Assembly (NCBI RefSeq): GCF_032062105.1
Contig: NW_026920828.1
Coordinates: 620,001 to 684,000 of the forward strand
DNA from: Saccostrea cucullata
Taxonomy: Eukaryota
Direction of reading: 5' to 3'
Length of the DNA stretch: 64,000 nt
The position numbers were made by a program, and so were the translations under genes. The notes under the pieces are model-generated. The model made no database searches. It was given only the letters and a program-made list of their open reading frames with translations, and was not told the origin of the DNA. Shown piece by piece: positions 50,262-54,453 of the stretch (position 1 is the first letter of the stretch; each line of letters starts with the position of its first letter).

Positions 50262-50488
50262 TTATCCATCTGTTGATTGGTGGTGGTGTCCGTGTGTTGG
50301 TTGGTGGTGGTGTCCATGTGTTTCATGGTGGTGGTGTCCATGACTTGGGTGGTGGTGCTCATGTGTCTGTTGATTGTGGTGCCCATGTGTCTGCTGATTG
50401 TGGTGCCCATGAGTATGATGGTTGTGGTGTTCACTTGAATGGTGACTGTGGTTTGGAAGGGGTCTTCGGAAAAGTAATATATGAGGTT
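50262..50488 (-). CDS. CKS1: Alternative CKS1 last coding exon with a His-rich tail (136-aa isoform)
   Basis: Acceptor tgttgttttag, then (E)PHILLFRRPLP followed by (THGHHxxx)n; same phase as exon 51910-51959. Confidence 0.75.
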
Positions 50489-51909
50489 CTAAAACAACAA
50501 ATAACATTCATTGAAAATCTACTCAAATACATGTAGATCATTGTAGATACCTAAACAAGGATTATCTCCCTGATAAATCAAGAGATATATTAACAACTCA
50601 TATCCTATGAATCAATAAAATGCAATTTTGATTTAATCAATATAAATTTTATTTATCTGGAATTATAAATATAACACAGTGCTTTCCCTAAGAACCAGCT
50701 ACTGGGCAAATTGACCGCTTCAATTGACAAAAATGCCGCTTTGAAATAAGAAACGAAAATTTAATTGCTGTAAGGTCAGAAGAGAACCTCTAACCCCAGC
50801 CTGTTACAACTGATCTCTAGCCCTTTACTTTGAAATAAAGGGAAAACCTTGATAACATTTTCGTCTTTACTCTTTAATATATATGAAGATTAACAATATG
50901 AATTTCCAGCTTTGGTAATGCTAGCTTTTCGTGTACATATATTAAAATCACTTCCACTCGGACCAAGATTGAAAAAAATTCTTTGTTTGCAGTTGCCAAC
51001 CCATGAATTTTAATTTTGGAAGGTGGGTTGGCATGTGGCAGCTAGCACTTGATAACTTGTGTAGTAGCTGAGCTAAAATTCAGTTGTCCCGGACTATTAG
51101 GCTTACATTTATAGTGTCAAAATCTGCAAGTTAAAAATTAAGCATAGAGCAATTTTTAAAAATAAATAATTATTTAGTTTGTGTACACGTCAATTATGAT
51201 CTTTTGATGATTTCTTTTATATTATCAGACTGGGGTCCTCACATTTAAATATTCTTAACAAAACCTTTTACATATTCTTATTTTTCCCCCATGAATACCA
51301 AAGATACCACTGTTGTTTTTAAAATAGAACACTGGTTTATATGGATGATCAGAAACACATGCCTCAGTTAGAGAACATGACTATAGAACAACTTTCAGTT
51401 TACATGTCTTCTTGGTTAATAATGTTAACCTCTCTGGTGTACATTGTAAACACCATGCATACATTCTGTGTTGTAACAATATTAGTATACCTCTACCTCT
51501 TGTGAATAAGAAAGCCAAGAAGAAGGACATTTTTTACCATTACCATATAAAGTTTCCTACAACTATAGCAAGCATAGTGTATACTGATGCAAGACAAAAC
51601 AACAGGGAGACAACTTATGCCTGGACGAGTGGTAAACAGGTATAACAGAGTCCCTGTAACATGCAGATGATTATGCCTTCTTCAGTTTTAGTCATGTTCA
51701 AAAAACATTGTAATGTTGTGATGGTTTAAAAATTTACAGATAATATATCATTGCAGAACATAAATGAATTTACAGTATCTCTTGATACTGCAAACACTGG
51801 GAATAATGAAAATGACATGCAGATAAATAATGGGTTAGAAATGAGACAATATGATAAATACACAATATTTACAGGGTTTGTTGAGATGAAATGTATGATG
51901 ATGATGAGA

Positions 51910-54453
51910 CTACTTCTGGTTTGGGTTCAAAGGTCGTCTGAACATCAGAATGTGGGGTTCTGAAAAAGTAAGGGAACCAGTTCATTACTGTATGATATGC
52001 AGATAGAGAATCCTTTGTCACATGTTTAATGATGTGGCATCTAGACTGCTTTATCGCAGAAGATTATCTCTCTCCTATTTTAAATAAGGTACATCACTCA
52101 GTAAGGGTGAAACGTTTACTGAATTTTGTAAACGTTTAAACGAACAGCAGTAAATGAAACGGTACCGTTTAAATGGGAGAATTTTATGTGTTGAATTTTT
52201 ATAGATTCTTACTCATGGAACACTATTTTAATAAACCATTTTTTCACTATAATGTAAATATGAGTTGCCATTACTGTTTATTTGTTGGTTTTTAAGACGA
52301 AAGAGGAGGAAGTGTCAAACAATGAAACAAGATAGTAACATAAAAATTAAAAATATAATACAATAACATTGAGGGTTCCGGTTTACGTTCAATTTTTCAA
52401 AGCTCTATATTCGAGTATTTCAACATTATACCGTTATAAGCATGATACTTTTTTATTTTCTACAATCAATAAAAAGCAACAACAGGGGCTATTTATTTTA
52501 GAACATATAATTGGGAAAATAAAATAATACACCGCTAGTTTTCACTAATCGGAAATCGGAATTAAATATGTTAGACCATATTGGTTTCTGTTTCTAGATA
52601 GTTGTGTTTAATATTACGTTGCTGGTATATAATATCAATTATAACAGAAAACAAATGTTTGTAACAGACACAGAGTGTGTTTTCTTTGGTAAATATGAAA
52701 TAAAACAACTTGTTTGGATGAAAGGTTTTTTTTTCTGATAGACGTTGATATCAACCTTCGTGTAAAAGTTTACTCAGTTTGTAAACGTTTAGAGCATTTA
52801 ACCGAAACGTCGCCGTTTACACGTGTAATCGTTTCGCCCTTATCACTCAGTACCCGTAGTATATACAAAGGAAATCACAAATACTATAATTAATGTCAGT
52901 GAAATTCTACAGCATTAATAATAATCATAAGAGATTGATTGATTGAGTTTTAGAAAGGGTTACTGTATCTTAAAAGAATTCTTAGTTTAGTAAGCAGCTG
53001 AAAACTGGTTTATCTTGTAAAGCCCTGACAATTAGATTATTTACAAATCTTTAAAAACCTGAAGCAGACTGACTTTAAAGCTAGTCATTAGGAATGTAAA
53101 AAAATTACCTGGTTCATGTTTCATGTAATGGATCCAGCCCTGGCTCTGCTGAACCCCAAGACTCCGCCATTCTGTTTCTGTCATCAGTTTATTGGGAACC
53201 AGTTTAGCAATTTCTTTGGGTAACATCACATGTCTACAAAATATATTAATATATGACACAGAATACATCTGGCAATCAAAGAAGTCTGAGTAATAAAAAT
53301 TTTAGGGAAGAGTCAAATATCAGTAATCGGATAGGGTCCTTTTACCTAGTGATGGGCACTCGGTTAATTTTCATAGTCAATCATCAGTTGGAATCAGTTA
53401 CTGCTTCCGACGCAATTTTACTGATTATAATCAGATGTTTTAGTTTTGTACATAAAAAAAGACTACCCTATACTGGGTTATTTAAGCAGGGTGATAATTT
53501 TAGTGTATTGATAACAGCCCGTTAAAAGTTTAATCGCTAAAATAGTCAGTACTCTTTTTAGTGTTCATCTGCAAAGAGCTGAAACCCTGCATCCACTAGA
53601 ATAAATTACGCCAAAATTATTGGCAAACTTTTGAGCAGACAAAATGCAAAATTTTCCACCCTCCAAGGAAACCTGCTATACGGTATTACAATTATTTCTT
53701 TAACAAGATTAATATATATAATTTATTGTTTTATTTGTTGTTTTGCTTCTGTAAAACTTTCTATACATGCATCTTTCAGTTCTTAATCACCTCTGCTTCA
53801 TTGCTAGTTGGTTAGTACATCATTTTCTTTCATAAAGAAGAAATTTTAAACAAGAAATGGAAAATTCCAGAATATAATTTATCAGAAGTACGTATCTGAA
53901 GATCAATTATGAAAAATTATAATTGATCATCGGAATCCGTACCAATGTTTCGTTGCCAATCCATGTTTTCTGATTATCTGTACACCAGTACTTTTACCTC
54001 TCTGCAAAACTGGGCTTAATACAGTTTTTTTATGGGTGGCAATGTAGCTACTGGTCGTCCATCCTATTTTTTTTCAGACCTGAGACTACAGTTCTGTAGC
54101 GACCTTTTACCAGGCCTGCATGTAACGATTTTCAGCCCTATTCCCCTAATACAAGTTTTCAAACGTTATCCAAGAAACTAAAGTATCTAGACATTGAGAT
54201 CTTAAGCTATATGTATATGAACAAGTGCTGCATAACACGTGACAAGTGACCCCTTTAGTCTATATACATTTATTGAAACCAGAGACGTATAATAAGAGAG
54301 GTTCTCTGTTGAAACGAATTATCAATAGAGGAAATTCGAAAGTGTCCTGTCCAGACACATCTTCGTGTTTGTTCATCAGGCAGGTCTCGCTTACCTATAC
54401 TCATACTGCTCATCTGTATATTTGTCAGAGTAATATATATTCTTATGCGCCAT
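51910..54453 (-). CDS. CKS1: Cyclin-dependent kinases regulatory subunit (canonical 77-aa isoform)
   Basis: Exons 54395-54453 ([19 protein letters not shown]), 53109-53233 ([35 protein letters not shown]) and 51910-51959 ([16 protein letters not shown]); phases are compatible. Confidence 0.95.
52102..52842. mobile_element. hAT-like MITE in CKS1 intron 2
   Basis: TIR TAAGGGTGAAACG / CGTTTCGCCCTTA; 8-bp TSD TCACTCAG. Confidence 0.8.

Follow-up and report, generated by a model that had tools for sequence, protein, structure and literature searches.

A CKS1-type gene of the oyster Saccostrea cucullata with a tandem-duplicated third coding exon and a histidine-rich reading frame in its second copy

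Cks proteins are among the most conserved components of the cell cycle, and we know of no other Cks in which the beta4 strand that contacts the cyclin-dependent kinase (CDK) is supplied by alternative exons. Here we describe a CKS1-type gene on the minus strand of a 64,000-nucleotide (nt) stretch of the Saccostrea cucullata genome (assembly GCF_032062105.1, contig NW_026920828.1, positions 620,001 to 684,000). This whole stretch is called the window below, and positions are counted from its first letter unless another locus is named. The third coding exon of the gene is duplicated in tandem, and the second copy, exon 3b, runs on into a frame rich in histidine codons. Splicing probably includes the first copy, exon 3a, by default, with skipping of 3a giving rise to a minor isoform that carries the tail.

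The nearest described relatives are the CKS1 models of Crassostrea gigas and C. angulata, X1 (87 amino acids (aa), XP_011439816, UniProt K1R758) and X2 (77 aa, XP_011439817.1), which match the two exon types. As in Saccostrea, transcripts carry 3a and 3b in series and the exon types differ by Met or Leu; unlike in Saccostrea, the 3b tail has 15 residues with 4-5 His, or 5 residues in one assembly. Human CKS1B and CKS2 (PDB 1BUH, 1DKS, 1CKS) share with the oyster the HEPEPH hinge, the beta4 strand and the anion-pocket residues, and the 77-aa oyster product aligns over its full length (E = 4.5e-38 to 1BUH). In contrast to the oyster His form, the human proteins have 79 aa and a short Lys-rich end, and to our knowledge they have no duplicated exon or long tail. 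Outside the Cks family the likeness is one of composition. Histidine-rich glycoprotein, a metal-binding protein with His-rich GHHPH repeats, resembles the Saccostrea tail (30 His in 64 residues, in HGHH units) in composition alone. The same holds for the His-rich disordered region of cyclin T1, which reportedly promotes phase separation with the carboxy-terminal domain of RNA polymerase II, and for that of DYRK1A, both from a different family and without homology to Cks. The closest analogy is Saccharomyces cerevisiae Cks1 (150 aa, PDB 1QB3), which also joins a Cks core to a low-complexity C-terminal tail, although its tail consists of Gln, belongs to the protein constitutively instead of coming from an alternative exon, and has an independent origin. 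The yeast protein has a 16-residue polyglutamine C-terminal extension that drives fibrillar aggregation in vitro (PMC3930463).

The coding part of the S. cucullata gene comprises the following features of the window.

54395..54517, minus strand: CKS1 exon 1, with the start codon ATG at 54453-54451, 19 full codons and 2 nt
53109..53233, minus strand: CKS1 exon 2, the core of the CKS domain, its 3' end encoding HEP plus one G (phase 1)
51873..51959, minus strand: exon 3a, an 87-nt internal cassette exon encoding the beta4 strand, NPNQK and the stop TAG at 51912-51910
50262..50488, minus strand: open frame of exon 3b, encoding EPHILLFRRPL and a 64-aa tail, with the stop TAA at 50264-50262
50265..50430, minus strand: in-frame repeat array with a 24-nt period, 7.0 copies and 79% matches, in units of about THGHHxQx (Tandem Repeats Finder)

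Exons 3a and 3b each have their own pyrimidine tract and AG acceptor, and both are in phase 1, compatible with the exon 2 donor at 53109. They are adjacent homologous exons of equal phase with separate acceptors, as expected of a tandem duplication, and they lie on the minus strand exactly where a first-pass annotation of the sequence had placed two same-phase exons for the conserved EPHILxFRRPL strand. Their ten shared codons differ at 12 nucleotides and in one residue, exon 3a having Met at human position 68 where exon 3b has the ancestral Leu. The resemblance is no accident; both exon types recur in six other bivalve genomes (see below). The 30 His codons and the 24-nt repeat of that annotation were likewise recovered in the window, and its picture of a repeat-built His tail stands, with the tail length corrected from 63 to 64 aa.

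Membership of the Cks family is clear from exon 2 alone, which matches Pfam PF01111 at 1.1e-18 (67.6 bits, cut-off 27); a profile search of the genome with PF01111 scored 69.5 bits at the CKS1 locus. Exon 1 covers positions 1-15 of the Pfam CKS profile, and exon 3b alone gave no Pfam match. In these searches the exons were taken one by one, and the full isoform was searched as the database protein XP_062596885.1. The anion (phosphate) pocket of Cks is formed by K11, R20, S51, W54 and R71 in human numbering, and L68 and R70 are CDK-contact residues (PMC3930463). All five pocket residues are invariant columns of our Cks alignment (A1). The arginines of the FRR motif are encoded by both 3a and 3b, and the beta-hinge HEPEPH is made across the exon 2/exon 3 junction with either copy. 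Within the core the isoforms differ only at contact position 68, which is Leu in one and Met in the other. In an AlphaFold2 model of the His-tailed isoform, built on 22 Cks sequences, residues 1-72 adopt the Cks fold, with the beta4 strand at 65-71 and a predicted local distance difference test score (pLDDT) of 74-90 by block. The tail (pLDDT ~45-56) has no secondary structure in the model and is predicted to be disordered.

Four public runs that contain exon 3b were aligned to positions 49700-54700. These runs were available as assembled contigs, in which rare forms are lost; run X4 is recorded as RNA, and runs X1 and X16 are guessed to be RNA. In each of these three runs a single contig carries three GT..AG minus-strand joints, 54395/53233, 53109/51959 and 51873/50488, and exon 1 is matched by RNA contigs as far as 54517. 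The order exon 1, exon 2, 3a, 3b is found in every spliced S. cucullata RNA contig seen, and the serial order recurs in five transcript contigs of C. gigas, taken from separate runs. Because the spliced contigs join 51873 to 50488, exon 3a lies inside the transcript as an 87-nt exon that has a donor of its own. The reading frame of the assembled mRNA closes in 3a, and exon 3b forms its 3' untranslated region (UTR). Mutually exclusive exons would occur one to a transcript, whereas the assembled transcripts carry both copies in series; 3a and 3b are a stop-carrying cassette exon ahead of a terminal exon. The first-pass annotation had described a duplicated, alternative last exon, and in this respect it has to be revised: 3a has a conserved GTAAAT donor and is spliced onto 3b in all spliced contigs seen. 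Between the 3a stop and this donor, at 51872, lie 37 nt that include a (CAT)4 tract. A stop less than 50-55 nt before the last exon junction should by the usual rule not trigger nonsense-mediated decay, and with its stop 37 nt before that junction the 3a-containing mRNA should therefore escape it. The RNA contigs diverge by 4-5% from the window in the UTR and may come from another lineage of the species complex.

The alternative product, in which exon 2 is joined directly to 3b, is present in databases as a set of gene models. When the 81-aa open frame around 3b was used in a word search, a single protein was recovered: a RefSeq model of 141 aa from S. cucullata, whose cluster also includes XP_062596885.1 (164 aa, 'uncharacterized protein LOC134258377 isoform X1'). 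An initial word search with a 74-aa 3b peptide gave no match, its length window of 41-130 aa excluding the ~136-aa isoform. The C terminus of XP_062596885.1 is identical to the reading of exon 2 plus exon 3b in the window; RefSeq thus models exactly the His-tailed Cks that exon 3b had been proposed to encode. Isoform X2 (XP_062596886.1, 141 aa) lacks 69 nt of the repeat and is probably a shorter repeat allele captured from RNA sequencing. Its gap was also considered as an intron and rejected, since it has no GT..AG placement and can be placed with AT..AC only. RefSeq models that join exon 2 to 3b exist for five oyster species (S. cucullata, C. gigas and C. angulata X1, C. virginica X1, and O. 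edulis). Both S. cucullata models start at ATG 54537. This upstream ATG (54535-54537, minus strand) is in frame with the CKS start without an intervening stop and adds 28 residues (MLILNSEF...). The 28 extra N-terminal residues are doubtful, because the RNA contigs stop matching at 54517, downstream of ATG 54537. The His-tailed isoform is thus already public as a RefSeq prediction and is unstudied; we found no literature on the gene, the exon pair or the His-rich tail, as judged by titles.

Six other bivalve genomes (Saccostrea echinata, Ostrea edulis, Crassostrea virginica, C. angulata, Magallana gigas and Pinctada imbricata) also carry the 3a/3b pair, a finding that answers the first-pass annotation's call for a check of conservation in related species. 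In all six, the 3a type has Met, a short tail, a stop and a conserved donor, and the 3b type downstream of it has Leu. Pecten maximus has one Leu-type exon 3 and no pair, and the second CKS gene of the S. cucullata genome has a single Leu-type exon 3 with neither a duplicate nor a His tail. Leu, the residue of 3b, is also the state in all other animals of alignment A1. Because the pair occurs in oysters and in Pinctada but not in Pecten, the exon duplication is older than the split between oysters and pearl oysters. Among oysters exon 3a is 83, 84, 87 or 89 nt long, with 33-39 nt between its stop and the junction.

Both copies bear the marks of selection on the encoded peptide, as had been suggested from their synonymous differences within the window. 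Across six species the ten core codons of 3b (PHILLFRRPL) have undergone at least 12 codon-state changes without a single residue change, and the core codons of 3a show 10 codon changes, again with no residue change. Under a crude neutral model, in which ~27% of random changes are expected to be synonymous, the synonymous-only pattern of 3b has P ~2e-7. These codon comparisons indicate that the core of exon 3b is under purifying selection at the protein level. We considered two ways in which the peptide might have been kept without translation from exon 2 into 3b. Gene conversion from 3a or from the paralogue is ruled out by the codon usage of 3b, which has choices of its own (TTA CTT, CGA AGA) unlike those of 3a or the paralogue. 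Read-through of the 3a stop into 3b also fails, as the 3a/3b junction itself makes a TAA in Saccostrea and 3a in other genera does not always have a length divisible by 3. The splice from exon 2 to 3b is the only route to translation of 3b; the RefSeq models of five oyster species and the selection on the codons lend it indirect support.

Beyond the core, the 3b frame of S. cucullata encodes a tail of 64 aa with 30 His (47% of residues). His tracts of the nuclear-speckle-targeting type are runs of about five or more His; the longest uninterrupted run here is 4, in interrupted HGHH and HHH units, and the tail is not a homopolymeric tract of that type. Tandem Repeats Finder also reported periods of 48 nt and 69 nt in the array, and the array in RNA contigs differs in length by 24, 3, 27, 9, 51 and 57 nt. 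Tail length ranges from 9 residues (C. virginica) through 12 (O. edulis) and 15 (C. gigas and C. angulata) to 63 (S. echinata) and 41 or 64 (S. cucullata), and the long His-rich form was found in Saccostrea only, among the genomes and proteins compared. An exhaustive search of 1.84 billion representatives with residues 29-164 of XP_062596885.1 gave 2,149 matches, of which the best 150 were collected; in the top matches with several matched stretches, the stretches are tandem CKS domains. Among the collected Cks proteins with a recognisable FRR motif (201 of 274), none but the S. cucullata models has a His-rich tail, with the proviso that composition filters may hide further His-tailed Cks proteins.

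Comparison of the two Saccostrea species sets the 3b frame apart from its surroundings. In this frame S. cucullata and S. echinata are 81% identical and are separated by only one indel, of 3 nt; their tails have 23 His columns in common. The adjoining intron is 70% identical, with indels of 1, 5 and 14 nt, and the adjoining UTR 74% identical, with indels of 1, 1, 3, 5 and 8 nt. When the RNA contigs and isoform X2 are counted as well, length differences are multiples of 3 in 8/8 cases within the frame and in 2/12 cases in the flanks (Fisher P = 0.0007).

Exon 3b is genuine, conserved since ancient times and probably alternative, and in one lineage it has undergone a low-complexity expansion. 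In the gene as we picture it, default splicing would include 3a and give a canonical 77-aa Cks, with 3b serving as terminal exon and 3'UTR. Skipping of 3a would join exon 2 to 3b in phase, and the product would retain the Cks fold and the phosphate-pocket arginine, have the ancestral Leu instead of Met at the CDK-contact position of beta4, and end in a species-specific tail. In Saccostrea this tail would have grown through in-frame slippage of 24-nt units to 41-64 residues or longer, ~47% of them His. By this account 3a skipping in Saccostrea would yield a minor protein isoform.

A number of observations weigh against this account, or against a function for the tail. The joint from exon 2 to 3b (53109/50488), which the first-pass annotation had named as the decisive junction, is absent among the joints listed for the contigs, 11 further joints lying outside that list, whereas the alternative that it named, 53109-to-51959, is present. 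The exon 2-to-3b splice of the RefSeq models is a database prediction, and 3b-type proteins in the protein collection come solely from genome annotation. The 3a-type protein of C. gigas, by comparison, is found there on 42 contigs, a good number of which belong to Logan transcript assemblies. The 3b isoform is therefore at best minor, and it is probably rare. It could therefore be asked whether exon 3b is now 3'UTR and nothing else in Saccostrea, with the His frame untranslated and the RefSeq isoforms artefacts of longest-frame prediction. Such a reading would agree with the position of 3a upstream of 3b in all spliced contigs, with word searches that returned no transcript-derived tailed protein, and with RefSeq models that are not fully reliable, their ATG at 54537 lying outside the RNA-matched part. 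We nevertheless regard it as unlikely: it does not explain why ten 3b codons went through at least 12 codon changes in six species without a change of residue, or why the His frame was kept between the two Saccostrea species while its flanks took frameshifting indels, and read-through from 3a (83, 84, 87 or 89 nt, with a TAA at the junction) cannot account for the conservation. Selection might instead act on the CAY-rich repeat as an RNA element of the common 3'UTR, such as a cluster of YCAY protein-binding sites, and not on a protein. The repeat is present as UTR in every assembled mRNA, all oysters have a further (CAT)n tract behind the 3a stop, and the 228 nt of S. cucullata 3b hold 20 YCAY motifs versus 7.7 in shuffles. 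However, YCAY enrichment is automatic for any His-rich frame, the S. echinata sequence is less enriched (14 versus a shuffle mean of 7.3), the expansion is absent in other genera, and it would remain unexplained why the core codons changed only synonymously, all of which makes an RNA element very improbable.

Granted that the isoform is made, its tail may still be functionless, a tolerated microsatellite-like expansion at the disordered end of a minor isoform, and this stands only somewhat below an even chance. The tail is predicted to be disordered, and its length and sequence differ from genus to genus (9 to 64 residues), which we count as a sign of weak constraint, as we do the variation in repeat length between individuals. 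In the M. gigas assembly GCA_963853765.1 (locus L010, 3b at 7226) the tail stops after PCHNQ, at 5 residues, apparently through a nonsense variant; the tails of C. angulata and of older C. gigas models continue beyond PCHNQ to PCHNQQTHHHKDLGH. So variable a tail is as compatible with a weakly constrained appendage as with adaptation. Set against this are a ratio of nonsynonymous to synonymous substitution (dN/dS) in the tail of ~0.37 between S. cucullata and S. echinata (binomial P ~0.015), which rests on ~31 synonymous sites and an ambiguous low-complexity alignment, and the retention of 23 aligned His at a synonymous divergence of ~0.58, an argument that is modest owing to low complexity and transition bias, since CAT/CAC transitions in His codons inflate the synonymous count. 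The in-frame lengths are open to a similar objection, as slippage of CAY triplets and 24-nt units yields in-frame indels without coding constraint. Together the tail figures suggest some constraint. From composition alone, the tail could plausibly sense metals or pH or take part in multivalent interactions, and it would be speculative to see in the tail a divalent-metal- or pH-sensitive multivalent interaction module in place of a tolerated expansion. In its fullest form, with the end of Saccostrea Cks1 acting as a His-rich sensor or targeting module by which a minor isoform couples the docking of CDK substrates to the Zn/Cu load or pH of the cell, or gathers CDK-Cks complexes in condensates, and with Leu/Met separately tuning CDK binding or strand exchange in all oysters and pearl oysters, this idea is quite unlikely.

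Whatever the tail does, the arrangement itself has been retained since before oysters and pearl oysters diverged, with both copies under selection. Because an arrangement this old has been kept with selection on both copies, the two Cks forms may well do different things. The Saccostrea expansion is also a clean natural case of a low-complexity His tail on a small, rigid, well-studied protein. Two things limit the value of the find: RefSeq already contains the protein model, and the isoform is likely to be rare. The two isoforms yield distinct tryptic peptides, and the tail should bind immobilized-metal affinity chromatography (IMAC) resin.

The remaining features concern the 3'UTR of CKS1, an insertion in this haplotype, and the paralogue.

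49887..50261, minus strand: first part of the 3'UTR, continuous with 3b, with contig pieces at 49887-50291 in all four runs
49097..49886 (approximate boundaries), minus strand: repeat- or transposon-like insertion of ~790 nt inside the CKS1 3'UTR
48545..49096, minus strand: inferred second part of the 3'UTR, with a conserved block at 48874-48820 and AATAAA at 48565-48560
C12685:390600-394900 (locus L003, 4660-8850): second CKS gene of the genome, which reads MSADQISYSEKYNDEKYEYR and whose exon 3 ends PLPQTTPHPAAMATKVK

The first part of the 3'UTR is 74% identical to S. echinata, with indels that are not all multiples of 3. The insertion at 49097..49886 is absent from S. echinata, in which the equivalents of 49913 and 49096 lie 29 nt apart, and from RNA contigs that leave the window at 49887 and continue for 459-587 other letters. 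It has a 146-nt internal period (Tandem Repeats Finder) and a GACAGACG microsatellite, and the depth of its words in the RNA runs, 4,000-194,000, marks an extremely abundant sequence. Beyond the insertion, the 55-nt block 48874-48820 forms part of C. gigas transcripts and is 80-85% identical in the loci of Crassostrea and Ostrea; positions 48981-48800 are 91% identical to S. echinata, and the 549 extra letters of the X4 contig fit the length of 48545..49096. Because the conserved UTR block is followed by AATAAA at 48565-48560, the CKS1 mRNA would seem to end near 48545 and not to run into the downstream TIR gene.

Three further observations were made at the locus. In intron 2, low-depth contigs of all four runs skip the 484 nt of 52294-52777 and have 6 other letters instead, probably an intronic insertion/deletion polymorphism. 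A (CAT)3-5 tract stands right after the 3a stop in all oysters (window 51873-51909; L004 12836-12874; L007, L008, L009) and would read in frame as SHHHH, CHHH or LHHHHH. The tract may act in splicing, or it may be what is left of a tail with His residues that existed before the exon was duplicated. Finally, a Death/TIR-domain gene lies directly downstream of CKS1 in C. angulata (L004 18066-24310) and C. virginica (L008 15392-16259), and the CKS1 neighbourhood is syntenic across oyster genera.

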